A stretch of DNA of 64,000 bases from Trichosphaerium sp. ATCC 40318 (Eukaryota > Protista > Tubulinea), in NCBI GenBank assembly GCA_038496445.1, contig JALMLS010000179.1:434001-498000 (forward strand), in the 5' to 3' direction. Shown here in pieces: positions 1 through 57,276 of the stretch (the stretch's first letter is position 1; the number at the start of each line of letters is the position of its first letter). The notes beneath the pieces were generated by a model that saw only the letters and a program-made list of their open reading frames with translations, made no database searches and had not been told where the DNA came from. A program made the position numbers and the translations under genes.

Positions 1-551
1 GCTGGTGTTACTGATAGTAGTCTTGCTCAGTTGGCTAAAGGTTGTCCTCTTTTGGATGAACTTGTTTTGGCTCATTGTAGTAATATCAGTTGGCCTGTAT
101 TGTCTTCTTCCTTGAAGAAATGGAAGCTTCTTAAGAAGTTCAATGTTCGTGGTTATCTTGGTATTGATGAAAATTCTGTTATCGAACATGAAGAGATCAC
201 ACATTTGAATATTTCATGGTAAGGAAGAAAACCTTTTTTGGTTTCTCTTTTTTTTTTCCCTCTTTTCGAGCTTTTTTTTTGATCTCTTGCCACTTTGTGG
301 TTTTATTGGTTGTTTACTTATTTTCGTTTAGGTGTAAGAAAGCCAATGATACTACAGTTTGTAATGCTATTAATTTATGTCCCAAGTTAGAGTGCCTTAA
401 CTTAAGTTGGCTACCTAATATCACCGGAAATTCTATCGTTTCTATTGCTACAAAGTCTTCTATTATTTCATTAAATATACGCGGATGTACTATGATAGGA
501 AAAGATGCTCTACGATTCCTTTCTACAACACCAATTTTAGTTCAAAGGTAA
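1..551 (+). CDS. Leucine-rich repeat (FBXL/AMN1-type) protein, 3' part
   Basis: Cys-containing LRRs (CPLLDELVLAHC, CPKLECLNLSWLPNIT, LNIRGC). Intron 219-331 (GTAAGG..TTTAG) joins W/CKK in frame. Runs off the window start. Confidence 0.8.
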
Positions 552-868
552 ACGACAAAAGAAAGAAAGAAAAGGAAAAAAGCTTCGAAAAAACGAAAGT
601 CTGGTATGGAGATTGAAAAAAAAAACAATTGAAAATACTTGAAAAAAAAAAATAAGCAACGATTTTTTATTTTGTTGCGTAACTTGTACTTGTAATACTA
701 TAACCAAATAATAATATATTACTCATTTATCAATGTTGACTTGTTTCAAAAAAGCACCTTCAAAAAGTTGGCAACAAGGTTACGTTGTTACATTATGAAA
801 GTTGTTTTTGGCTATTTTTACATTTAGTTTGGTTGGGTTTTTTTACAAGGTGGTAAGTAGTTAGGGGT

Positions 869-1138
869 TTACAACTTCATCGCCAGAGGTATGTGAGCTG
901 GTGAGCAGAGTTTTAAAGGCGAGCAGTCGAGTTCCAAGTCACCAAAGTCGAGTCTGAACTGAGAGTTTATTTCTTCTTCGCGTTTTGTCTCGTCGATTGT
1001 CGGTATGATCTCTACTCGCTCTGAGAATGTAACTTGGCCATGTATTATCGAGGGTTCGATCACAGATGTTGTTTTGCGTGAGAGGAGGTTGAATGCGCGG
1101 CGTGTAAAGGATTTGAGAGACTTGGTAAATGTAAACAT
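869..1138 (-). CDS. 89-aa cassette microprotein (basic N-terminal leader; QVTFSERVEII RVxF-like motif), copy 1
   Basis: ATG-to-TAA ORF intact in all three cassette copies. Confidence 0.65.
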   Translation of the reverse strand: MFTFTKSLKSFTRRAFNLLSRKTTSVIEPSIIHGQVTFSERVEIIPTIDETKREEEINSQFRLDFGDLELDCSPLKLCSPAHIPLAMKL

Positions 1139-1869
1139 CTGATTGCAAGCAAGATTTGTGGTTAGTTCGGTTCAAGAAGTAAGATTATGATGTTTTAAGA
1201 CACTTTGGAGTCTTTAGTTTTGCAAACTGCACAAACTACATTTTTTGCGCACCCTAAAAAACATGTTGTATCGCTTGCGTTTATCGGCGAGTGTGCGTCA
1301 AGAGTGCAAACAAGTCATTTTGTGTTTGTTCTCGGATTCTCAATTTCTCAATAATTTCAGGGTATTTCCGTTATTCTCACAATAATTCTCCGTATCAGAC
1401 CGAGAGTCTGTTTATGGTACAACGTTATTAAAAATGATTCTTTGGTGTGGGAGGTTATTGGGTTTCGTTTCAGAGTAAATTTCAAGGAGATATCAGCTAA
1501 AAAAAGCAATTAAAAGTATATCATTTACTTTATTTGTTTGTATTCGTATTTTTCTTTTTTACGTGACTGTAAAACGAGACTGCAGGTGATGGTAGCGTCG
1601 CCAAAAGCATTTTCATCCATAAAAGTCTGTTGTTGGAACAGACAAAATGTGTACATTTGTATTTTTTCGGGCACTTTTTATTAAACTGCTACAATCCGAT
1701 TTCTCCATCTAGACTAATGGTCAGTAAGCGATACAGGTCTATTCATAAATCAACATGGTTTGTTCAATGCGATTTATACTATTAATGGATGGTTTCGGTG
1801 TAAAGTTAGACTTCAGTGTTTCGTTAAGTCAAAATACTAAAAACAACACAAACGAAACAACTCTTCCAA

Positions 1870-2475
1870 ATGCTTTCTTTCATCAGAACATCTATCATCA
1901 GCGTATTCAAAAGACGTACACGCAATACAAAGGGTAAATCAAAGACTCTTGAGAAGCTTGCTCGTAAACCTCTTAATCTTGGCGCCATTGCGACAGTGCT
2001 GAAGGAGACGGCGACACAAGTGACGAACATTCACTCGGCTGGCTACGCACACTTGGGAGTCTATTCAAACGCCATCACAATCATGCCAAAGGGTCAGATA
2101 CAGCTCGGTGGTACAAACAGAGCAACAAAGATGACCAACGGTGATACCTACAAATTCCCAGACCAAGGCGATTCCATGACCACAGATGTCTCCCACATTG
2201 GTTACTTGGCTGTCAGACTGTACCTCGGCGACTACGGCGATGAATGGGTAAACATGGCAAACGAAACAGGATTCTCATACCTCACAGCTCATTACACAAA
2301 CTCTGGACGTCAGATAAATAGATTGATAGATGCCAAAGCTCCACAGACTCTCATTCATTTCGTCAAGAAGTGTTTTGAACAAAACACAACGGCCTCAGAT
2401 CTACTGGATACACAATTGATTCACTTTGCGTCAAGTGCGCGCATCACGAGTTTATCTCGTGCTTGCAGGAAATAA
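1870..2475 (+). CDS. STE20-like pseudokinase, C-lobe only (201 aa), copy 1
   Basis: IATVLKE..IHSAGYAHLGVYSNAITI..GQIQLGG aligns to IAxILxE..LHSxGxIHRDIKxxNILL..GxVKLAD. DVSHIGYLAVRLYLG matches DIWSLGITAIELAxG. FVKKCF..TASDLL matches FVxKCL..TAxELL. HRD and DFG are absent. Confidence 0.8.
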   Translation: MLSFIRTSIISVFKRRTRNTKGKSKTLEKLARKPLNLGAIATVLKETATQVTNIHSAGYAHLGVYSNAITIMPKGQIQLGGTNRATKMTNGDTYKFPDQGDSMTTDVSHIGYLAVRLYLGDYGDEWVNMANETGFSYLTAHYTNSGRQINRLIDAKAPQTLIHFVKKCFEQNTTASDLLDTQLIHFASSARITSLSRACRK

Positions 2476-2565
2476 CTTCTCTTCCCACCTAAAAAACTTG
2501 TATTATAAAAAACAACTTCGTCAAAATAAATGTACTATACCTCGCCACTTTCGTTTGTTTCACAT

Positions 2566-13577: not shown

Positions 13578-15778
13578 ATGGAGGGTCTGTCTTCGCGTTT
13601 TAAAAAGATAGTTATGAAGGGGTACGCGAATCTGTAGAAAAAGAAACATTTTTTTTGTCGGTTGTCGATCTGTTCTACAACCTTCTCTAACGCCCTGCAG
13701 AGCGGATGCTGTATTAAATAAAAACCCTGTGGAGGTCCTAGTGAGGGAGGCCACTGGAAATGAGCATTGGGGCCCAACAGGAACACAAATGCAGAAGATC
13801 TCTCAAGCGTCCTACAATTATGAAGATTATGGTTTCATTATGCAAACACTATGGAGGAGATTAGAATTGAGGGGTAAAAGCTGGAAAAATGTCTACAAGG
13901 TATTTAAAAAAAAATGGTTTTACATCAAAGAATCTTCGCTACGAGATTTACGCATTTGCACAAAAGGAAAAGTGCACTCCAAATGAATTTTTTTTGTTTT
14001 GGATTTAACCAAACAATTAGGCGTTGTTAGTCATCGATTATTTGATCAAAAACGGCTCTGACCGCGTCATTGATGAATTTAAATCACGCTTGCGTGTCTT
14101 TCAAGGCTTGTCTCATTTTCAATACGTGGACGAACACTCTAAAGATCACGGCTTGTCAGGTATTCAAAAACCGCGTGAAAAGGTTTTAATTCTGACACTT
14201 ACGGCATCATTTAGTTCGCGAACGATCAAAAATATTAATAGACCTACTACAAGACGACAGAGCCATTAGAGAAGCGAGAAAAATCGCCAGTAAAAATAGA
14301 GAAAAATACGGGCAAGGTATTGGCTCACATCACAGCAGAGCTGGCGGCAGTTTTGGGTAAGCTATCTCACAATTTTTTTTAAAAACTATTTCTGGACGTT
14401 TTTTTCCCTCGCTAAAGGCGTTCGCGTTTTTTGGAGGTGGACAAATTCAATTCCACTTTTCAGCCTGTTTTCAAATAATTTTTTTTTCGGAGTTTTTTGG
14501 CGCTTAGGTTTCGATTTTAACAATTCTTAGTGGTAGTGGCGCTTACGGCAATGGAAGAAATGGTGGCAGTGGCGGTGGCAATTATGGAAGAAATGGTGGC
14601 GGTGGCGGCTACGGTCGTCGTAGAAAGTCAGCTTATGATGACTCTGACACTGGTATGTTACCTTTAAAACAAATTTTGTGTTTTTTGTTATTTTTTTCCG
14701 TCACGTTGGTAGTGCTTCGGTGCTCAATTTTTTTACGCTCTTTGCGTAGCAGTTTATATTTACTCGCTCTTAATTATTTCATTACCCTGACTGTACTCTA
14801 GAAAGCGAATCCGAGGAGAGTGATGACGAAGAACAAGAAGAACCTCTACGCGAAGAAAAACCTGCACCTGCGGCCGCGCCTGCAGTTACAACTGTCGCTG
14901 CGCCAGTGAATCCAGTTACCCATCAGGGTTGGAACGCGTTCCAAGATTCCTCGACAACAATGGCTGATCCATTCGGTATAATACCAACTCCAGCTACTAC
15001 CACACCAACTCCCACAAATACACACCCAGCAGGCGGTTTCGGTAACTTTGGACCTGCACCAGTTGCAGGTACTCCTCCTGCCTCTGGTTTTGGAGCATTT
15101 AATGCACCTCCTCAAGTTAGCAATACCCCTACTACTCCAGCTTATGTGGATTTTATGACACCTACACATACGCCTACTCAACAAAATGGCAATGTTGGCT
15201 TGAATTCACAATTTGGTGCCTTTGGCGCCGCTCCTCCAGCTGCTCACAACGGTGCTCAAATGAACCACCCTGCTGTTCATGGTCAGCAACCACTGCAAGC
15301 GTCTAACATTATGCAACCAACTCAACCACCACAAACTGGTAACCTCCTCACGCCTGTGGCAGCTCCAACAACTCAAGGCACTGGTGGTGGCGACTTATTG
15401 CAACCTATTGTCCCTGATGCACCTAAAAAACCTGCTGATGATCCTTGGTCTTCCTTGGTTGATCTTAATAATATCACTGATAGCAACAAGCCAGGAACAA
15501 AGAAAATTAATTTTAAAACAGAGAAGAGTACCAGAACCATTGCACCTGTTGTGGTACGTTATTGAACTTTTGTTTTTTTTGGTTTTTTGAGCTTGATTCT
15601 TTTATTTCCCTCTGTGCAACCAAATGTTGGTTTCTTTCATTTCTACGCCATCACATGTCGTATGTGGTTGTTTTTGATGGATTATCGTGGTTTGAGGCGT
15701 TTAATTCTTTGTGTTCGGTATTTTTTTTGACTTTTTTTTAAGCACTCGTATGGCCAATATCCCGTGTATCATCAATAA
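13578..15778 (+). CDS. Epsin / ENTH-domain clathrin adaptor
   Basis: VREATGNEHWGPTG, LWRRL..WKNVYK, LIKNGS and FQYVDE..DHG (ENTH), followed by a disordered tail with DPF/DPW and LVDL. Last exon 15743-15778 is inferred. Confidence 0.9.
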
Positions 15779-16116
15779 ATTGCCTTTTTAAAAGGCTTTA
15801 AACGCGTGTAGTGAAAAAAAAACAACCACTACATGTTTCGAAAGTGAAAAGGAAAGAATGTTGGGGATTTTTGTTGGCTCTTTGGTTATGAAAAAAAAAC
15901 GGCTTATGTACACCATCATGTAAAAAAAATCTACAAAGTAAATTATGTTACGTCAAACAGCCTCTGTTTTTTTTGTAGTTGAGCAGATAGCCAACAAAAC
16001 CGAAAGTTGGTAAGGAGTTACATTGTTTTTTACTGTTGTTACAATATGAAAGTTGTTATTGGCTATTTTTACATTTAGTTTGGTTGGGTTTTACAAGGTG
16101 GTAAGTAGTTAGAGGT

Positions 16117-16386
16117 TTACAACTTCATCGCCAGAGGTATGTGAGCTGGTGAGCAGAGTTTTAAAGGCGAACAGTCGAGTTCCAAGTCACCAAAGTCGAG
16201 TCTGAACTGAGAGTTTATTTCTTCTTCGCGTTTTGTCTCGTCGATTGTCGGTATGATCTCTACTCGCTCTGAGAATGTAACTCGGCCATGTATTATCGAG
16301 GGTTCGACCACAGATGTTGTTTTGCGTGAGAGGAGGTTGAATGCGCGGCGTGTAAAGGATTTGAGAGACTTGGTAAATGTAGACAT
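16117..16386 (-). CDS. 89-aa cassette microprotein, copy 2 (RVTFSERVEII)
   Basis: Three amino-acid differences from copy 1; canonical RVxF in this copy. Confidence 0.65.
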   Translation of the reverse strand: MSTFTKSLKSFTRRAFNLLSRKTTSVVEPSIIHGRVTFSERVEIIPTIDETKREEEINSQFRLDFGDLELDCSPLKLCSPAHIPLAMKL

Positions 16387-17114
16387 CTGATTGCAAGCAA
16401 GATTCGTGGTTAGTTCGGTTCAAGAAGTAAGATTATGATGTTTTAAGACACTTTGGAGTCTTTAGTTTTGCAAACTGCACAAACTACATTTCTTACGCAC
16501 TCTAAAAAACATGTTGTATCGCTTGCATTTATCGGTGAGTGTGCGTCAAGAGTGCAAACAAGTCATTTTGTGTTTGTTCTCGGATTCTCAATTTCTCAAT
16601 AATTTCAGGGTATTTCCGTTATTCTCACAATAATTCTCCGTATCATACCGAGAGTCTGTTTATGGTACAACGTTATTAAAAAATGATTCTCTTCTTGTGG
16701 AGGTTCTTGGGTTTCGTTTCAGAGTAAATTTCAAGGAGATATCAGCTAAAAAAAGCAATTAAAAGTACATCATTTACTTATTTTGTTAATCCGTACTTTT
16801 CATTTTTACGTGACTGTAAAACGGGACTACAGGATGGTAGCGTCGCCAAAAGCATTTTCATCCATAAAAGTGTATTGTTGGAACAGACAAAATGTGTACA
16901 TTTGTATTTTTTCGGGCACTTTTTATTAAACTGCTACAATCCGATTTCTCCATCTAGACTAATGGTCAGTAAACGATACAGGTCTACTCATAAATCAACA
17001 TGATTTGTTCAATGCGATTTATACTATTAATGGATGGTTTCGGTGTAAAGTTAGACTTCAGTGTTTCGTTAAGTCAAAATACTAAAAACAACACAAACGA
17101 AACAACTCTTCCAA

Positions 17115-17720
17115 ATGCTTTCTTTCATCAGAACATCTATCATCAGCGTATTCAAAAGACGTACACGCAATACAAAGGGTAAATCAAAAACTCTTGAGAA
17201 GCTTGCTCGTAAACCTCTCAACCTTGGCGCCATTGCGATAGTGCTGAAGGAGACGGTGATACAGGTGACGAACATTCACTCGGCTGGCTACGCACACTTG
17301 GGAGTCTCTTCAAACGCCATCACAATCATGCCAAAGGGTCAGATACAGCTCGGTGGTACAAACAGAGCAACAAAGATGACCAATGGTGATACCTACAAAT
17401 TCCCAGACCAAGGCGATTCCATGACCACAGATGTCTCCCACATTGGTTACTTGGCTGTCAGACTGTACCTCGGCGACTATGGCGATGAATGGGTAAACAT
17501 GGCAAACGAAACAGGATTCTCATACCTCACAGCTCATTATACAAACTCTGGACGTCAGATTAATAGATTGATAGATGCCAAAGCTCCACAGACTCTCATT
17601 CATTTCGTCAAGAAGTGTTTTGAACAAAACACAACGGCATCAGATCTACTGGATACACAATTGATTCACTTTGCGTCAAGTGCAGGCATCACGAGTTTAT
17701 CTCGTGCTTACAAGAAATAA
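17115..17720 (+). CDS. STE20-like pseudokinase C-lobe, copy 2
   Basis: 201 aa, seven amino-acid differences from copy 1, frame intact. Confidence 0.8.
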   Translation: MLSFIRTSIISVFKRRTRNTKGKSKTLEKLARKPLNLGAIAIVLKETVIQVTNIHSAGYAHLGVSSNAITIMPKGQIQLGGTNRATKMTNGDTYKFPDQGDSMTTDVSHIGYLAVRLYLGDYGDEWVNMANETGFSYLTAHYTNSGRQINRLIDAKAPQTLIHFVKKCFEQNTTASDLLDTQLIHFASSAGITSLSRAYKK

Positions 17721-18135
17721 CTTCTCTTCCAACCAAAAACAAAAACTTGTATTCTAAAAAACAACTTCGTCAAAATAAATGTATTTTAGCAACACTTTCA
17801 CGTTATTTTTACCGTGTACGAGCGCTCAGTGATATTTGAAACAGCTAAAATGAATGTATTATCTCAATAGAATCAAATTCATACATAAAGTAGTTTATTT
17901 ACAAAGGCTCCAATTATGATTGGACTTGTGCATAGAAAAAAGCTACCTCAAACAAATCGATTGTTACAAGGTGCCAAAAGCCAATCCCATCCCTTTTTCT
18001 CACTAGTATACAATAATATGACAGCCCGCATTCCCCTAGTTTTTAATACCAGTATAGAACGCAGGGAAAAACCTAAATCTACCAAGGTGATCTAGATAAA
18101 GAGAGTCCTCCCTCATCGAAAAAAAAACAGAGGCT

Positions 18136-19775
18136 CTACATGTAGACTTTGATAATACTCGTTATCTGTTTTCGACAAATAGGACATGTGTCGTTCCCAG
18201 GGCGGTTTCGAAAAGCATCAGCACACATGCTGCAAAATGTGACGTGTCCACAAGGAACACATATACGATCAGCCAATGCATCAAGACAAACCTAAACGAA
18301 CCATTAATTTTTCAATTCAAAAAACATGACTGTGAATGCGAGCTGTTTTCAGTAAAAATAAGTATGAACCAATGCACCACTGAGCGTTGGGTCTTGAGAG
18401 AAAAGGATAAAAAAAGTTTTAAAGATGTATGTTTAACGTAAATGACAAGTTAAAAAACCTTTTAATTCTGTGAACGCCTAAGCTTTGCTTTGGCTTTTGT
18501 TTTGATCTACAACAACCGATTCGATTTCAAAAAAAAGTTCACGTACTCTACATGATTGTGGTCCTCCTTTTGCGTCTTCCATTTCTCTCAGTTTCTTTGA
18601 CTTTGCTAAAGACAGATTCTCAACAACACATTTGGCCTTTAAAATCTCTGCATCAAGCTGCTCTAATGTCATTTTACTATAATCTGGTACAATTGGTATT
18701 GCTACTGCGTTTGCTACTGCGTTTGCTGCTGCTGCCGTTGCTGCCGCGTTTATACGCTTAGCGTTTGCCAGTTGTTCCATACATGCGCCTATTTGTTGCT
18801 TTTGAGCGCCCAGTTGGTGTTCTTGAATCTGTATTGTGTTTTGTAGATTTTTGATCTGTTGATTAACTTGATCTCCAATTTGGTGTAAACGTGCTTTTAG
18901 AGTATTATTTTCAGCTACAGTATAATAAGCTCACCGATAGGCACGATTTAAAACTAATCTAACAAGAATAACCAAAGTTTTTTGTTTCGCGCCAAGAAGT
19001 CCCAAACTCGTACCTTTTTGCTTGTTGTACTGGGCTTCACCTATTGTAAACCTGTTTCTCTCGTTTTGAAGCCTTGAATTCGCTTCTTTTGCCTGTTGTT
19101 TGACATCATTTAACATTTTATCTTTTTGAGCTAGTTGGTCTTTCTTTTCGCGTATTTCTCTGCTAAGAGTAATGTTGTCGTCTTTTACTCTAGCCAAAAC
19201 GTTCTCAACTTCAACACGTTGGTTTCGCAAGCGTTGTGCTTCTTGAAGTAACGCTTCGTTTTTGGTTTGAAGCACTTGCTGTAGAATAAATTAGGTCGAT
19301 TCAAAACAATTTGATTTAACCGCACAATGAATTCTACTACTTCGTTGTCGGGCCTTTGCGATGTTTCCACTGTTCTAGCAGGGCTATTGAATCTTGACAA
19401 AGTTGGCGCTAATAGCAAAGCATTAGTTTTGCTAAAAACTGTCCTTGTACATGGAGCCATATCGTGTGGTGTGGGACTAGGGAATCCACGACCAAAATGG
19501 CTTTGTTGTGGAGGAAAGGGCGCAGCATTTCGTAATGGTGTTTTAGGCTTAGCGCGTAGTATACGCCTACTCTATAAGATGTTAAACAATTCAGGTATTT
19601 AGATGAGGATTGTTTTTCAAATCGCAAATACATACACGAGACGTGTCAGGGCTCATGGACGCTAAGTACGTAAGTTTTAGGTCAATTATTGATGCTTACA
19701 GTGAAGAGGTGGAGCAAATCGTTGATGAGCGCGTGCTGGTGACCCTCCGTATTCTAGTTGTCCCAGGTAGTCCAT
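18136..19775 (-). CDS. Coiled-coil + C-terminal C3HC4 RING E3 ligase, multi-exon
   Basis: Last exon reads CVCVPCGHVTFCSMCADAFRNRPGNDTCPICRKQITSIIKVYM*; long coiled-coil exons upstream. Confidence 0.8.
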
Positions 19776-24770: not shown

Positions 24771-25649
24771 TTATGAAATTGTACAACTAGTACTTTTGGA
24801 CTTTTCTACTAATCTACCATCGTCATGCCAACGTTTGGATTCTCCTTCACGTTTATTGTCAACATAATTGCACTGAAACTTGAGTCTACCATCATAATTC
24901 CAACACTTCATCTCTCCTTCTTGCTTACCATTTACAAAATAAGATTTCTTCCTCATTTGGCCGTTTTCATGCCATGCTATACATTCACCATCCAATTTAC
25001 CGTCAACAAAGTGACACTGCTCACTCAACTGACCTGTGCTAAGCCAATGTTTGTACTTTCCATTTTTTTTATCATTTTTAAACATTGCATGTTCCCACAG
25101 CAGACCATTCCTATACCACTTCTTATACTCTCCTTCTATTTTACTATTAACATAAATACCTCGGCATAGTACTGCTCCATCATTCCAATAAAACGTAAAC
25201 TCTCCTTCTCGTTCACCATTAACATAAAAACACTTCAAATACAATTGTCCATTTCCGTACTGCTCTAAGTACTCTCCTTCTTGCTTATCGTTTACATAAT
25301 AGCTACGCATACTTAATTGTCCATTGATGTACCAATCCTTATGCTCACCATTACGTTTACCATGTACCCAATTCTCCTCTTTTTGAAGAGTTTTCGATTT
25401 TGAGATTCTTACTTTTTGGGCGTTGTTGTGTTGTAGCCATTTTCCATGTTTTTTTAACTCACCATCAAACCTTGAAGTAGTTGCCGTGTATTTCGAAAGA
25501 AGAGGCCACGTTTTATACACTTCAAAGCTTAAATCGATAATATACAAGTGTAACTCTACTGGAAGGTCTAATATGGAACAATATTTCGATTTTGAGGTAT
25601 TAGGAGTTCTGGTAGTACCGGTGTTCTTATTTTTTTTGGTTTTCCTCAT
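24771..25649 (-). CDS. F-box-like + MORN-variant (YwqK-like) repeat protein
   Basis: ILDLPVELHLYII, then about eight repeats YxNGxxxxxxxYxNGKxxGExxxW; intronless. Confidence 0.85.
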   Translation of the reverse strand: MRKTKKNKNTGTTRTPNTSKSKYCSILDLPVELHLYIIDLSFEVYKTWPLLSKYTATTSRFDGELKKHGKWLQHNNAQKVRISKSKTLQKEENWVHGKRNGEHKDWYINGQLSMRSYYVNDKQEGEYLEQYGNGQLYLKCFYVNGEREGEFTFYWNDGAVLCRGIYVNSKIEGEYKKWYRNGLLWEHAMFKNDKKNGKYKHWLSTGQLSEQCHFVDGKLDGECIAWHENGQMRKKSYFVNGKQEGEMKCWNYDGRLKFQCNYVDNKREGESKRWHDDGRLVEKSKSTSCTIS

Positions 25650-28256: not shown

Positions 28257-29270
28257 CTAAAAAGTTGTACTGTTCTCCCACACTTGTCTCACGTTAATAT
28301 TGAAACGTACAGCATCACCTTCCATCCATTTGGCACAGTCTTTCCACTCTTTTGGACTTTCTTGTTCATTCAAGTATGATGGTACTGAGTTCTCCATGAT
28401 ACGTGCAACACCATGAAAACAACGTCTCGAAGAACCTGCCATTATCACTGTATCACCACTTGAAATAAAAAACGCTGTAGGCTTTGTTTTCTTTGATTCT
28501 GATCCAAGAAGAAAAATAACAGTTCCACCAAAACTACAACTTACAATAGGTTGAGAAAGGTCTTCTTCTGAATTATCTTGGTGTCCACCCATGACATGCT
28601 TAAGGCTGGTATAGTAATTGACAGTAATTGCTTGTGGGATGTAAGGAGAAGTGGATTCCAATGATTCTTTCGGTACAAAAGTCGCAAATTGTTTGGCAAG
28701 ATCTGAAAGGTCTTGAGGCATTTCTCCTCGCTTTTCTCTACTATATTCTCTTTCTGTCCATTGAAAGTGGTACCCCATATTCACCCAACGTATGTGATCC
28801 TTTAGATCATGTGTAATCTCTTTAAAACGGTAGTGCGATTCAGGAAAGTCAGCTTCTTCTTTAGGTTGTTTCAGTTTTCTAAGAGACGAAACATTCGTTG
28901 GGTTATTGATTGGAAAGTCTCTTACGCATCTCGATATCCAATATCGTTGTTGTGCAGGCGTGAAGGGATTTGGAATGAAATAAAATCCAGGATGGTCACG
29001 CAAGCCGTACATTTCTATTTTGGTTACATCGAAGTACGTTGAAGCTGTGATGCTTGATTGTGGTATAGGGACTTTAAATATACCTCTCGAGTTACCTGGA
29101 GCATAATCCTCTGGTTTTAGCTTACTAAAGTTTATAACATCTTCAAAAGAGTTTTTTGTGCGTTGAATGTTTGCTCTACGTTCTCTGCGAGATTTTGGCT
29201 CACTGTAGAACTTGTAAAACTTCTCCGATTCTCTAAAGGCGTCTGACGCCTTTGTTTTACCACTACTCAT
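28257..29270 (-). CDS. ALKBH1: AlkB homolog 1-like 2OG-Fe(II) dioxygenase
   Basis: RWVNMGYHFQW, VNYY, GGHQDxSE, SGD..MAGSSRRCFHGVARI and RFNINVRQV motifs. Confidence 0.92.
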   Translation of the reverse strand: MSSGKTKASDAFRESEKFYKFYSEPKSRRERRANIQRTKNSFEDVINFSKLKPEDYAPGNSRGIFKVPIPQSSITASTYFDVTKIEMYGLRDHPGFYFIPNPFTPAQQRYWISRCVRDFPINNPTNVSSLRKLKQPKEEADFPESHYRFKEITHDLKDHIRWVNMGYHFQWTEREYSREKRGEMPQDLSDLAKQFATFVPKESLESTSPYIPQAITVNYYTSLKHVMGGHQDNSEEDLSQPIVSCSFGGTVIFLLGSESKKTKPTAFFISSGDTVIMAGSSRRCFHGVARIMENSVPSYLNEQESPKEWKDCAKWMEGDAVRFNINVRQVWENSTTF

Positions 29271-37651: not shown

Positions 37652-38273
37652 ATGAGTGGACAGCCGCAAGCTAGTAAACTAACAGCTACGAAGAGGGTCA
37701 CTGAAATTGTGCGGTCGTACAACCTACAACCCTTACAGGCACGTTACCAAAGCAGCGTTTTTCTTTTAAAACCCGCTGTTTGCTCTGCGACTGGGTCCTA
37801 AGTTGCGTAAAGAATCTAACTGGGTTTAAAAAGCAAAACGTTAGTAGTTGCACCGCGAGTGGGAGCTATGCTCTGCGACTGGATTCTAAGTTGCGTTAAG
37901 ACCACTCTCCACGCGGTGAAGCTGCGCAATCTTTTGGTTTTTTTGGTTTTATACGTCTCCTGACGTACATAACTCACTTGTGCTCTAGGCTAGTTATGAT
38001 GCAGCTATTAAAAACCTTGCAGAGAGGCTAGTACAAGCTGAAAAAAAATGTAATTCTTTGGCAGGAGTTAAGAGAAAACATGATCAGCTCGTACGAGATT
38101 TGAACGTTTCACAACAGCGTGTAGTTGGATTGGAAGCACAAAACAAAAAACTTAAGAAAGCCATTCTTCTCGTTTCTGCTATCATAAAACCGATCGCAGA
38201 CGCAACTGCCGATGATAGTGATGATGTAATATTGATAGAACAACTACAGCCCGGTGGACAGCAAGATGAATAA
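37652..38273 (+). CDS. Small coiled-coil protein with a 250-nt structured, probably GC-AG, intron (37739-37988)
   Basis: ATG at 37652. CAG|GCACGT donor and TCTAG acceptor join in phase 0 to ORF 38058-38273. Confidence 0.55.
37756..37925 (+). other. Twin RNA hairpins sharing a 33-nt apical motif
   Basis: TGCTCTGCGACTGG(G/A)T(C/T)CTAAGTTGCGT(A/T)AAGA at 37781-37813 and 37869-37901, each on an unrelated basal stem. Confidence 0.7.
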
Positions 38274-38422: not shown

Positions 38423-38662
38423 TATTTTGACGAATGTAGTTTTAGAATTACAAACGTAAGAAAAGAAGGGAAAGAGGCATTACACAAGTTTTAAACTGTT
38501 TTTACTTTTTACATTCTTGGCTTTACCCCTTCGAATGCCAGGTTACAATGGCTCCAAGATTGAGAGGTTTACAAGCAAGTTTCTCAAGAGTTTTTGATTT
38601 ACCCTTTGTACTGCGTGTACGTCGTGTTAATGTTGACGATGATGTTCTGATGAAAGAAGCAT
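38423..38662 (-). pseudogene. Pseudogenised pseudokinase of cassette copy 3
   Basis: ATG at 38662; net -4 nt of indels gives TAA at codon 12. Homology stops after LNLGAI and resumes only in the 3' UTR. Confidence 0.85.
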
Positions 38663-39385
38663 TTGGAAGAGTTTTGTTTCGTTTGTGTTGTTTTTAGTAT
38701 TTTGACTTAACGAAACACTGAGGTCTAACTTTACGCCAAAACCATCCATTAATAGTATAAATCGCATCGAACAAACCACTTTGATTTATGAATAGACCTG
38801 TACCGTTTACTGACCATTAGTCTAGATGGAGAAATCGGATTATAATAAAAAGTGCCCGAAAAAAATGTCTGTATACACATTTTGTCTGTTCCAACAACAG
38901 ACTTTTATGATGGAACTGCTTTTGGCGGCGCTACCATCACCTGCAGTCTCGGTTTAGTCACGTAAAAAAGAAAAATACGAATACTAACAAATAAAGTAAA
39001 TGATGTATTTTTAATTGCTTTTTTTAGCTGATATCACCTTGAAATTTACTCTGAAACGAAACCCAATAACCTCCCACACCAAAGAATCATTTTTAATAAC
39101 GTTGTACCATAAACAGACTCTCGGTATGATACGGAGAATTATTGTGAGAATAACAGAAATACCCTGAAATTATTGAGAAATTGAGAATCCGAGAACAAAC
39201 TCAAAATGACTTGTTTGCACTCTTGACGCACACTCACTGATAAACGCAAGCGATACAACATGTTTTTTAGAGTGCGTAAGAAATGTAGTTTGTGCAGTTT
39301 GCAAAACTAAAGACTCCAAAGTGCCTTAAAACATCATAATCTTACTACTTGAACCGAACTAACCACGAATCTTGCTTGCAATCAG

Positions 39386-39655
39386 ATGTCTACATTTACC
39401 AAGTCTCTCAAATCCTTTACACGCCGCGCATTCAACCTCCTCTCACGCAAAACAACATCTGTGGTCGAACCCTCGATAATACATGGCCAAGTTACATTCT
39501 CAGAGCGAGTAGAGATCATACCGACAATCGACGAGACAAAACGCGAAGAAGAAATAAACTCTCAGTTCAGACTCGACTTTGGTGACTTGGAACTTGACTG
39601 TTCGCCTTTAAAACTCTGCTCACCAGCTCACATACCTCTGGCGATGAAGTTGTAA
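39386..39655 (+). CDS. 89-aa cassette microprotein, copy 3 (intact)
   Basis: One amino-acid difference from copy 2. Confidence 0.65.
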   Translation: MSTFTKSLKSFTRRAFNLLSRKTTSVVEPSIIHGQVTFSERVEIIPTIDETKREEEINSQFRLDFGDLELDCSPLKLCSPAHIPLAMKL

Positions 39656-40080
39656 ACCTCTAATTACTTACCCCACCTTGTAAAAAAAACCCAACCAAAC
39701 TAAATGTAAAAATAGCCAAAAACAACTTTCATAATGTAACAACAGTAAAAAACAATGTATACTACCAACTTTTCGTTTTTGTCTGCTACCTGCTACTACA
39801 ATAATGTAACAGCAGTAAAACACAATGTAATATAAGTAAGTCTAGCTTACAGCTACGCCAAAAGGCGGTCAAGACCACTTCCTTACAGAAATCCTCGACA
39901 AAGCAAAACGAAATGTGCTGTAATTCCAAATGGAGTAAAATACTTTGGCATTTATTGTTCCTTTTTACGCACTACAAACACTGTTCGCAGTGGATATTTT
40001 ACTCCTAACAATTCTCATTGGTGGGTATTTCTCAGAAAGTAGTAGTGGTCATCTCGTTAAAGGTTTGAACCAGTTTGTTA

Positions 40081-40722
40081 TCAATTGTCTTGGATTTTTG
40101 CCTCCTTGTCCGGCAGCATACACTTGTCACAACACATTTCTAACTCTTTACCGCGTTCAATCTCACACTGACACGTACCGCACATAAAACCTTGCACCTC
40201 TGTATTGCAATAATCGCAGCGCAACGTTTGGTAGTTTACCTCCATCTCATGCTCGTGATAATATGTGCAGCCTTGGCAAACGTACTTCCCGCAACTTGGT
40301 ACTACACAACGACTGAACACACCTCCCTCACGAACGCAGCAATAAAATGTTTCATCACAAGAATTACACGTAAATACGTCATTGATGCAGTTAAAGCAAA
40401 TGTCATTCCCACAAGCACACGCAACGGTGTATATCTTATGTACAGGCATTACACATCTATCGCATAGTATTCTTTGTTTTAGTTTGTAAAGACTCTGCCA
40501 TGTTTGATCTTCACCGAGACACGCCTTTGGATATAATTCAAGCAATTTAAACCGCCACACGCATTCAGTTGAAAACACTTGTCTTAAATGATTGTTTACG
40601 CGACCCATCGCACCTATCGATGGTCTTGGAAGTATTTGTAGAATGTGACATATAATTTCGTTTGGTAACGTTACTAGGGTCGCTTTATGGGTATGAACTT
40701 GATCTCTCACGCGCTTTTCCAT
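40081..40722 (-). CDS. F-box + Cys-rich (zinc-binding) protein, paralog A
   Basis: LVTLPNEIICHILQIL F-box and many CxxC pairs; intronless. Probable 1-nt loss in an A-run near the end; the corrected frame would stop at 40049. Confidence 0.8.
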   Translation of the reverse strand: MEKRVRDQVHTHKATLVTLPNEIICHILQILPRPSIGAMGRVNNHLRQVFSTECVWRFKLLELYPKACLGEDQTWQSLYKLKQRILCDRCVMPVHKIYTVACACGNDICFNCINDVFTCNSCDETFYCCVREGGVFSRCVVPSCGKYVCQGCTYYHEHEMEVNYQTLRCDYCNTEVQGFMCGTCQCEIERGKELEMCCDKCMLPDKEAKIQDN

Positions 40723-47053: not shown

Positions 47054-47803
47054 ATGGAGAAACGTACCAGAGATCATATAAACGCCAATGACGCCACAAT
47101 TACGTCACTTCCAAACGAAATTGTTATTGAAATACTGCAAATGCTCCCATTAGAGTCAATAGGCTCACTGTGTAACGCAAACAAACAATTACAAAAGCTA
47201 TTTTCATCAGAGACACTGTGGATGTATTTGGCGCACTTTGAGTGTCCGTGTATAGAGTCTCTTGACGAAGTAGACGCAGATACATGGAAAAGCTTTTTTA
47301 TCTCCCTACTTGACTTCACCTGCCGTATCTGCAGCGAAGTGAATCCCTTTAAGGACAGTGTAATATGTGGATGTGGTCACTACGTTTGCTACCCACTATG
47401 CAGCGCTTGGGACGACCTTACATGTAATTCTTGTGACAAAACATTTTATTGCAGCTGTACTCACAAAGATCCTGAAAGATTCGGAGACAGAAAATATCAA
47501 CAATGTGCTACTTGTCAAAACTATGTTTGTAGAAAATGCTATTTGAAATGGTATATCTATCACGATAAGGGTAAGGATATCTTTCGTTGTGCTCATTGCA
47601 ATGTGCAGTTGAACAGAGTGCATAGTTGTATGTGTACTAAGTGCCAGTACGAAGTTGAAGTAAGAGGCAAGGTGCTTGATGTTTGTTGCGACAAGTGCGT
47701 TGTACCAGACAAGGAATCTATCCACCCAAAGCAATTCATAACCAATTGGTTCAAGCCATGTAAAGAGACAAACACCAGCGATAACGCAATTGAAATAAAA
47801 TAA
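47054..47803 (+). CDS. F-box + Cys-rich protein, paralog B
   Basis: ITSLPNEIVIEILQML. Shares MEKRxRD, TCNSCDxTFYC and CCDKCxxPDKE with paralog A. Confidence 0.82.
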   Translation: MEKRTRDHINANDATITSLPNEIVIEILQMLPLESIGSLCNANKQLQKLFSSETLWMYLAHFECPCIESLDEVDADTWKSFFISLLDFTCRICSEVNPFKDSVICGCGHYVCYPLCSAWDDLTCNSCDKTFYCSCTHKDPERFGDRKYQQCATCQNYVCRKCYLKWYIYHDKGKDIFRCAHCNVQLNRVHSCMCTKCQYEVEVRGKVLDVCCDKCVVPDKESIHPKQFITNWFKPCKETNTSDNAIEIK

Positions 47804-54386: not shown

Positions 54387-57276
54387 ATGGGCGCTATCAT
54401 CAGCTATTTCTATAGCCTTGTATTTCCAGTATTCAAACCGCCAGTAGATGGTTAGCATAAAAATACCTTAACCATGTACTAATATTGCTATAGATGATAC
54501 ACCAGACAGCGATAACAAAACCAGTGATGTACGTATTTGACAGGCCTATTTCTAGAACCGTACGTTAACAAGCGCTGCAGGAGCCTACTACTACGCCTAA
54601 AACTACGCCAAAAAGCACCGACGACAAACCCTCCAAACCCAACGAAGGGAAAAACGACGAGCCAACGCGAGACCCTGTTACACCTGCTAGTATGTTCGAT
54701 TTAAAGCGCGATTTTGTTTGTTTAGTTAGTACTCACTCACACTTACAGAAACAGACAAGAATGAGACAGCGCCAGCACCAGAGAAAACGTACGCCATTTT
54801 TGCATCAAAAAACTAAAAATTAGATTCAAAATAGCCTTTCTGTTCCTAATTCGTCTTAGTAAACCAATACCATCTACAGCAGTAAACGCTGAAGAGAAGA
54901 AACCAAAAGTAGACGAGTACGCATTATTTTTTCGCCAATTGTATTAAAACTATCAAACTTCGCAAAGTCTTCAAATCACGTCTAGTTTAAACCGGTGCTC
55001 GCATTCCTATCAATTATAACTCACGATCATTGTTTTTGTTTTCGAACCGTCATCGACTAATTTCGGCCTCTAGATCCCAGTCTAAAGAAGATACTACACC
55101 TAAAGTAACACAAGAAACAACAACCAAGCCACAAGCTGAACCTAAACCTGAAATTATCCCAAAACACGTAGATGAGGAAGAAATTCTTCAAAAAGTCCTA
55201 GACACTGAAATTCCTAAAGATGAACCTACTACTATCGCAGCCGCTCAAATCAAACCTGATGTTCTATTAACTCAACCTGCAGTATTAATTGCTTCTCTAC
55301 CTGTCACAATAGCCGAAGAAGACATACTCACAACTGCTCCATGTGTTCTAGAGTCTGATTCTCTTGCTACAATACCTTCATTCGTATTTGAACAAGATAT
55401 TGAAGAAGAAGAGCCTGTTCTAGCATCAAAAGCACCTCCTCAAGTTGAAGAACCATCAAAAGTCGCGCCAGCACCTCTTAAAGAAGAAAAAGCGTCCGTA
55501 GAAGTACAGAAAGACGTTCAACCTATTGTCGTGTCTGAACCTAAAAAAGAAGAACCTGCAAAACCAAAAATCGTACATGGACCACCATCTACTGTACAAC
55601 ACGTACTCTACTACAACGCCCTCAAATCTCAGAAATTTCCTGTATTGAAGGAACCAAAAAAAGTAGAAGAACCAAAGAAAGCTCCTACACCAGAACCTGT
55701 TGAAAAGAAGGAAGATATCAAACCTGCCTCTGAACCAGTAAAAGAACCTGAAGTAGAAGCGAAGAAACCAGAAGATACAAAACCAGTAGTCAAGCCTTCA
55801 ACAGTACAACATGTTCTATACTACAGCGCGATCGCATCCACAAAATTCCCTAACGCTCCTGTGACCGAGAATAAGGTTCTAACAGACCTTGCTGATGCGC
55901 TTGCTGAGAAGTCAGCAACTCCTGAAAAGAATGAGGTATTGACAGATCTTGCTGATGCTCTTGCCGAGAAGTCTGCTGCTCCCGACACGACGGTTACAGA
56001 GAAGGCTGGAAAGCCTTCTACAGTCCAACATATAACATACTACAACGCACTTAAATCTCAAAAGTTCCCTCAAGCTGTTGCGAAGAAAGAAGTCGTCGAA
56101 GAACCTAAAGTGGAACCAGTCGCAGAAGTATCAGAGGTAGAACCTGTTGTATCAACTCCAGCACCTCAAGCTGCAGTCGAGGAACCAAAACAAGCTGTCG
56201 AAGAAGTAAAACAAACTCCTGCAGTAGCTCCACCATCAACAGTACAACATGTACTCTATTACAGCTCAACTGCTTCAGCGAAGTTCCCAGCTGAAAATAT
56301 GAAGACTGAAGAACCAAAGGACACACTCGCCCCTGCAGTAGTTGCCCCTGTAGAATCCCCTGTAGCAGTTGTCGCGCCTGTTGAAGCGCCTGTGGCCATT
56401 GCAGCTGTCGCAGCCGAATCAGAAGTCCTCGCTTCAATTCCAACACCAGAACCAGCAGTTGAAGAACAAAAGAAGCCAGAAGAAAAATCACCTGTCGATG
56501 TTCCACCATCAACAGTCCAACACGTACTCTACTACAGCTCCACGTCATCAGCGAAATTCCCTGCTGAAACGATGGAAACCCCAACCACTCCAGATGTTGT
56601 AGATACAATAGAACAGCCTAAAGAAGATGTTATTGTTCCAGTATCACAACCGGCAACGGTTGCTCCAGTAGAGGAGTTAAAGGCTGCAGTTGTATCTCAA
56701 GATGTTGACAAACTCGCTGCTAGCCCAAGCGCCGAACCTGAAGAACCTGTACAAGAAAAGCAGGCACCACCTAGTACAGTCCAACATGTTGCATACTACA
56801 ACGCTCTCAAATCCGTCAAGTATCCAACTGCTCCAGAACCAGAGACAAAATCCCAAGAGGCAAAGAAACCTGTGACTGAAACAGTTGCTTCTCAAGCACC
56901 TCCAGCAGTTGATGATCTAGTCAAACCCGTTGAAGAGAAAACAGTTCCAGTTATCACAGAAGAAACAAAAGAATCGAACAAGGATAATCAAGATACACGC
57001 GTGTCTACCGTTCAACATACAGTGTATTACGGTGTTACCTCAGCTGCAAAGTTCAAGAACGTTGAAGAGCAAAATACAAAGAAAGAACCAAGCCCAAAAG
57101 CGATTGAAACAAAAGCGCCTGAAACAAAAGTAGCAGCTCCTCCTCAAGAGCAAGCTTCTAACCCAGTTGTTATTTCGAAACCTTCGAAGGCACAACTATT
57201 GAATATATGGGGTAAAGGAGACTCTATAATTGCGCCAGTAACCGCACCAAAGTTGGTTCCTCTTGATATGTGGTGA
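54387..57276 (+). CDS. Acidic, Pro/Glu-rich disordered protein with seven PSTVQHxxYY..KFP repeats
   Basis: MGAIIS start, several short 5' exons and a long last exon (ORF 55030-57276). Confidence 0.85.

Follow-up and report, generated by a model that had tools for sequence, protein, structure and literature searches.

The repeated unit and its genomic setting

The window, that is, the whole stretch of 64 kb that was analysed, is a compact, non-human eukaryotic region with ~38% G+C. It contains genes for HSP70, CCT, CDC20, and an ALKBH1-like protein, and genes of the DUF547, DUF2828, F-box, LRR, MORN, and RING types. Introns split some of these genes, including those for HSP70, CCT, and CDC20, and several neighbouring genes appear to be single-exon, with ORFs of 213–748 aa. 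AATAAA is the most enriched hexamer past the host stop codons, where it is found in 9 of 16 genes (4.3-fold enrichment). Searches for Rfam families and tRNAs gave none in the window, the repeated unit included. Apart from this unit and an internal repeat inside one gene, no dispersed repeats were found in the window. A 748-aa ORF at 55030–57276 (+) repeats a 'PSTVQHV.YY....KFP'-type motif about eight times and lacks a Pfam match, and its DNA holds the only other long direct repeat of the window, at 56205–56306 and 56478–56579. The ALKBH1-like ORF of 337 aa (28257–29270, −) is 40–43% identical to its closest database relatives. Exact-sequence look-ups of five ORFs of the window, the two of the repeated unit and three of the host, gave no record. 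From both results, the host lineage is apparently unsampled in the databases searched.

The repeated unit is ~1.8 kb long and is present three times within 39 kb of the window, as two direct copies and one inverted copy; this copy count refers to the 64-kb window. It comprises an ORF of 201 aa on the plus strand and an ORF of 89 aa on the minus strand, arranged head to head and separated by a spacer of ~730 bp. Copy 1 (763–2534, +) and copy 2 (15972–17783, +) are intact, run in the same direction, and are 15.2 kb apart. Copy 3 (38423–39800, −) is inverted, lies 21 kb beyond, and is a deletion derivative. These boundaries were obtained by a repeat search, blastn, and edge alignment. By blastn, positions 780–2534 (+) of copy 1 match 16030–17783 (+) of copy 2 with 96.3% identity and 39748–38546 (−) of copy 3 with 94.0%. 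Pairwise alignment of the left edges extends the similarity of copies 2 and 3 to ~15972 and ~39800, respectively. At the left edge of copy 1, similarity is strong from 780, recognisable to 763, and weaker to ~733. Exact DNA words of the cassette have no match in viral and metagenome contigs.

All three copies are intergenic and interrupt no ORF. Copy 2 lies between the converging last exons at 14906–15565 (+) and 18136–18276 (−, a RING exon), and copy 3 between the converging last exon at 38058–38273 (+) and F-box ORF at 40081–40722 (−). A preliminary description of this DNA had placed the three copies at the coordinates given above, with copies 2 and 3 between converging 3' ends of host genes, and the present alignments and gene positions bear out both statements. 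It had also stressed that the cassette is free of introns in an intron-rich genome. This feature is not unusual here, because several neighbouring genes are apparently single-exon, although others are split.

An E3 ligase-type gene adjoins every copy of the cassette, which may be due to chance, as the window is rich in F-box and LRR genes. LRR/F-box-like ORFs are seen by eye to the left of copy 1 (Pfam negative), a RING exon stands to the right of copy 2, and an F-box ORF is beside copy 3. The genes concerned lie at 31–551 (+), 18136–18276 (−), 24771–25649 (−), 40081–40722 (−), and 47054–47803 (+).

The two reading frames and the spacer

The larger ORF occupies 1870–2475 (+) in copy 1 and 17115–17720 (+) in copy 2, and its two products share 96.5% amino-acid identity. 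The comparison of these copies gives 10 synonymous and 7 non-synonymous codon changes (dN 0.015, dS 0.076, dN/dS ~0.2), with a significant excess of the synonymous ones (Fisher p=0.0014). The 201-aa ORF is a coding sequence under purifying selection. When scored with the codon usage learned from host ORFs, it is best in its own frame and falls near the bottom of the host range.

The product of the larger ORF resembles the rear lobe (C-lobe) of protein kinases. In a PDB profile search, kinases account for 11 of the 13 sub-threshold matches (E=0.13–1.7), and the best of them is a weak match to the pseudokinase STRAD-alpha (E=0.13–0.36). All kinase alignments fall on the alphaE, catalytic loop, and DFG regions, and a second collinear segment aligns to kinase subdomain XI. 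The Ser/Thr kinase profile PHROG 2361 covers residues 24–171, again weakly (E=0.025). The kinase similarity lies below every curated threshold, with no Pfam match at E≤1 and nothing in NCBIfam or PADLOC. In the alignment to STRAD-alpha, HRD is replaced by HLG and DFG by LGG, and the catalytic and metal-binding aspartates are absent. The ORF begins at about helix alphaD/alphaE and is without the N-lobe, including the glycine-rich loop and the VAIK lysine. Neither a three-frame reading of the spacer nor a Pfam search of all stop-to-stop pieces found an N-lobe upstream, where the frames are full of stops. An NA-iREase2 match among the spacer pieces in the Pfam scan (E=0.003) was below the cut-off and was set aside. 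From its sequence, we read the 201-aa protein as a probable kinase C-lobe remnant that would be incapable of catalysis, at a level of similarity below formal significance. The label of pseudokinase that was given to it earlier is based on matches that are all sub-threshold.

Wider searches with the 201-aa ORF gave no credible relative, either in an exhaustive HMMER search against 1.84 billion cluster representatives or in the word-index search, viral contigs, and metagenome contigs. The sole match of the exhaustive search, P0001, is a bacterial repeat protein aligned to a low-complexity stretch and was dismissed. The single-sequence AlphaFold2 model of the protein has a pLDDT of 38 and is unusable.

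The smaller ORF is located at 869–1138 (−) in copy 1, 16117–16386 (−) in copy 2, and 39386–39655 (+) in copy 3, and is intact in all three. It is the best-conserved segment of the unit, with 98.5–99.3% identity in every pair and 98.5% between copy 1 and each of the other two. In all three copies this segment has diverged 2–4 times less than the adjoining non-coding DNA. It has 3 non-synonymous and 2 synonymous changes, which are too few for a selection test. Other short ORFs overlap it. With the host-trained codon usage, it has the best score of the six frames, again near the bottom of the host range. Searches of Pfam, NCBIfam, PADLOC, PHROGs, and PDB returned nothing credible for the 89-aa ORF, and no credible relative was found among 5.8 billion protein clusters (word-index search) or in viral or prokaryotic contigs. 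Its single-sequence AlphaFold2 model (pLDDT 48) is unusable; the protein is predicted to have one N-terminal helix followed mostly by disorder. Residues ~33–45 (GQVTFSERVEII) recall the RVxF plus hydrophobic-pair docking motif found in regulators of protein phosphatase 1. The usual basic residue of the RVxF-type motif is absent from this stretch, and Pfam is negative. The N-termini of the 201-aa and 89-aa ORFs look alike by eye; this likeness was not significant and was rejected.

The spacer between the divergent ORFs (1139–1869 in copy 1) is presumed to hold a bidirectional promoter. Its identity between copies is 93.9–96.1%, compared with the higher values of the 89-aa ORF, and it includes a variable patch at 1429–1630. 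The earlier statement that the spacer is as conserved as the genes has to be corrected accordingly.

Termini, the deletion derivative, and mosaic divergence

The right end of the unit is marked by the 12-mer TTCGTCAAAATA, which has exactly three matches in the window against 0.01 expected. They are at 2517–2528 (+), 17766–17777 (+), and 38423–38434 (−, by exact motif search), that is, at the right end of each copy and in the matching orientation. In copy 1 the right terminus (2517–2534, +) consists of this 12-mer and then AATAAA at 2524–2529, the hexamer spanning the point where copy 3 diverges. In copies 1 and 2, AATAAA stands 49 nt past the stop codon of the 201-aa ORF, at the right end of the unit. 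Taken together, the ends of the unit agree to ≤6 nt across three unrelated intergenic settings. Across the 400 bases outside either end, flanking similarity does not exceed that of shuffled controls, and an apparent continuation of similarity past the right end, seen by eye, was rejected as not significant against shuffles. The outermost ~30–50 nt are more diverged than the core on the left of copy 1 and on the right of copy 3.

The usual hallmarks of transposons were looked for at these ends. There are no terminal inverted repeats, the best inverted matches being internal and at chance level. No target-site duplications were found, and the flanks of copies 2 and 3 have none in common. No transposase-like ORF is present within the window. 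The unit ends with TTGTAG... / ...CAAAATA in one orientation and with TATTTTGAC... / ...CTACAA in the other. It does not have the set of features of a Helitron (5'-TC, 3'-CTRR, 3' hairpin, and A/T insertion), and a conserved subterminal hairpin was not found. There is also no poly(A) tail, and there are no TG..CA ends with duplications of 4–6 bp. The unit does not fit a retrocopy or an LTR element, as two divergent ORFs and the spacer were copied jointly. Two statements of the preliminary description hold on these data: all copies stop at TTCGTCAAAATA (three of three), and the window offers no transposase, inverted terminal repeats, or clear target-site duplications.

Two further short repeats were seen near the ends of copy 2. 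A 13-nt inverted match (12/13) at 16070–16082 and 17771–17783 lies ~35–63 nt past the stop of each cassette ORF. It may represent a shared 3'-end signal, an idea that was dropped with the count at chance level. Short GAAAGTTG-type repeats with a spacing of ~46 nt occur near the left end of this copy.

In copy 3 the large gene has been destroyed by frameshifts together with a deletion of ~490 nt. Similarity to the other copies stops at unit position 1990, and ~110 nt of unrelated filler (38435–38545, −) take the place of the deleted large-ORF sequence before the match resumes over the last ~31 nt. Since the filler lies before TTCGTCAAAATA and these last ~31 nt, copy 3 is an internally deleted copy that retains the terminus. 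The last ~20 nt of the filler resemble the 3' UTR of the cassette, and a search for its source gave no match within the window. The broken remnant of the 201-aa ORF (38541–38657, −) keeps about the first 40 codons and misses the rest. It has four indels, at unit positions 1874, 1893, and 1903–1904, one of them a 1-nt deletion just past the ATG. The left end of copy 3 is straddled by a 27-nt direct repeat (25/27 identical) at 39801–39827 and 39731–39757. This copy therefore carries a local duplication of ~70 nt, and its true left end may be 39827.

The changes private to one copy cluster by region: copy 1 is the most divergent at 780–1428, copy 2 at 1429–1630, and copy 3 at 1631–1990. This regional heterogeneity is significant (chi-square 40.7, p=3e-8). 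Such a mosaic distribution of changes suggests ectopic gene conversion, either among the known copies or from unsampled ones.

Origin of the cassette and its relation to known systems

At least two copying events have involved the unit in full, from the 3' end of one gene through to the polyadenylation signal of the other. The copies occupy separate intergenic gaps of a 39-kb neighbourhood, one of them in inverted orientation. The mosaics indicate that the copies later traded sequence with one another or took it up from unsampled ones. The earlier proposal that the pair moves as a unit gains support from the same two ends in three unrelated intergenic settings with no common flank. No relatives of the unit are known, and the data show no more than a small dispersed repeat or orphan gene family.

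The best explanation, to which we give a probability of somewhat less than one half (about 0.45), is a low-copy duplicative cassette with defined ends, which carries a functional, lineage-restricted gene pair and is moved by functions encoded elsewhere. It is favoured because the ends coincide to ≤6 nt in three settings, one of them inverted, an outcome that is hard to obtain by independent duplications of the repair type. Also in its favour are the terminus retained by the deleted copy 3, the 89-aa ORF that is intact there next to a remnant with four indels, the purifying selection on the 201-aa ORF, the own-frame codon usage of both ORFs, the consistent kinase matches, the regional clustering of copy-specific changes, and the AATAAA at the right end. 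The transposon hallmarks looked for in vain, the sub-threshold level of the kinase similarity, and the unusable structure models count against it. The cassette would act as a non-autonomous mobile element that belongs to no recognisable superfamily and has amplified locally, with the mobilising enzyme presumably encoded outside it. Copying would proceed via DNA rather than RNA, since both divergent genes travel together with their promoter region. The 201-aa product would be a C-lobe without the ATP-binding N-lobe; because HRD reads HLG and DFG reads LGG, it is predicted to transfer no phosphate, and its role would be limited to that of a scaffold for binding or a decoy. The 89-aa product would be largely disordered and co-regulated from the shared spacer, and is a plausible partner or regulator of the 201-aa protein.

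The main rival to a cassette with defined ends is local duplication with concerted evolution, which is possible but rather doubtful. According to it, repair or recombination made local duplicates of an ordinary host orphan gene pair that is itself immobile, ectopic gene conversion homogenised them, and the visible ends are the limit of selection and conversion at the 3' ends of the genes. The match of the unit ends to the gene ends, with the right end at an AATAAA signal, is in line with this account, as are the purifying selection on the 201-aa ORF, the mosaic of copy-specific changes, and the fact that transposon hallmarks were not found. The three known copies are clustered in 39 kb of an otherwise repeat-poor window, which counts against a mobile element, and local duplication would yield the same picture. 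The greater divergence of the edges than of the core also fits old paralogues held alike by gene conversion. However, two independent events should not produce both ends within a few bases and without donor flank, and the flanks had no time to erode beyond recognition, since the neutral parts of the core differ by only 2–11%. Of what is expected from segmental duplicates evolving in concert, clustered mosaic paralogues are seen (three copies in 39 kb), whereas arbitrary ends or common flanks are not, the ends coinciding to ≤6 nt and the flanks being unrelated. It is improbable that the ORFs are not genes at all. The unit would in that case be non-coding repeat DNA, or else transposon cargo in the form of a decaying kinase pseudogene fragment, and its frames would owe their survival solely to the young age of the copies. 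The low AlphaFold confidence, the failure of the databases searched to yield homologues of either ORF, the overlap of the 89-aa ORF with other short ORFs, and the small number of its changes, which prevents a test, would agree with such a unit. Against it stand the significant synonymous excess in the 201-aa ORF, the host-like codon usage of both ORFs in their own frame only, and the reduced divergence of the 89-aa segment relative to adjoining non-coding DNA in every copy.

A selfish toxin–antidote element, in which one product kills non-carriers and the other rescues, with copy 3 as an antidote-only form, is very unlikely. Tight linkage, co-duplication, and lineage restriction of the two genes would suit it, and one copy keeps the small ORF only. 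The combination of a pseudogene with a conversion-like mosaic has been described for wtf genes (PMC11497594). In contrast, the Pfam, PHROGs, PADLOC, NCBIfam, and 5.8- and 1.84-billion-cluster searches gave no similarity to known drivers or toxins. The nuclease and the catalytic aspartate that Spok requires are both absent here, and wtf is a single-gene family rather than a gene pair. The small-ORF-only pattern was seen once, and ordinary decay would produce it just as readily. The preliminary description, which put forward the toxin–antidote idea, had itself named confinement of the copies to this locus as evidence against it, and all copies seen in the window do lie within 39 kb. Less probable still is a new minimal two-gene selfish element that moves without inverted repeats or duplications, in which the dead C-lobe would be the toxin or decoy, the disordered 89-aa protein the antidote, and copy 3 an antidote-only relic.

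Should the duplicative cassette with defined ends be capable of moving on its own, this would represent a mode of transposition without the usual marks in an unsampled eukaryotic lineage, and a truncated, catalytically dead kinase lobe would be kept by selection alongside a tiny partner gene. If only local duplication took place, the locus would be a case of routine orphan gene birth and concerted evolution. Recombination between the direct copies 1 and 2, or with the inverted copy 3, could delete or invert the intervening 15–22 kb of housekeeping genes; within the window there is no sign of such a rearrangement.

Among known systems, the wtf family of killer meiotic drivers in Schizosaccharomyces pombe is multi-copy, contains a pseudogene, and shows a mosaic that suggests non-allelic gene conversion; the drivers belong to a single-gene family, and their loci are often near solo LTRs (PMC11497594). 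The cassette resembles them in being a lineage-restricted multi-copy family with a pseudogene and a conversion-like mosaic, and differs in having two divergent ORFs, no LTRs, and no sequence similarity. The spore killer Spok of Podospora needs a predicted nuclease domain for killing and the kinase catalytic aspartate for resistance (PMC6660238). Kinase-related sequence in a duplicating unit is common to both, but Spok is one protein with nuclease and kinase domains, while the cassette has no nuclease, no catalytic aspartate, and no similarity to it. In Caenorhabditis tropicalis, F-box/substrate modules gave rise to toxin–antidote pairs (bioRxiv 10.1101/2024.09.16.613340). As in those modules, a linked two-gene module is duplicated as a unit here, and E3-type genes adjoin the copies; unlike them, the cassette encodes no F-box protein, and the E3 genes nearby are not part of the duplicated unit. 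The likeness to STRAD-alpha consists of a weak match across helix alphaE and across the catalytic loop and DFG, both of them degenerate. STRAD itself folds into a full kinase with two lobes, whereas the 201-aa ORF lacks the N-lobe, and E values of 0.13–0.36 do not establish membership. The cassette differs from MULEs by the lack of terminal inverted repeats and target-site duplications, from Helitrons by the lack of 5'-TC / 3'-CTRR ends, and from both Helitrons and Pack-MULEs by a cargo ORF under purifying selection and only three clustered copies known. With Helitrons and Pack-MULEs it nevertheless shares dispersal with fixed ends, the lack of its own transposase, an apparent host-gene fragment (the kinase C-lobe), intergenic insertions, and an internally deleted copy that retains the terminus.
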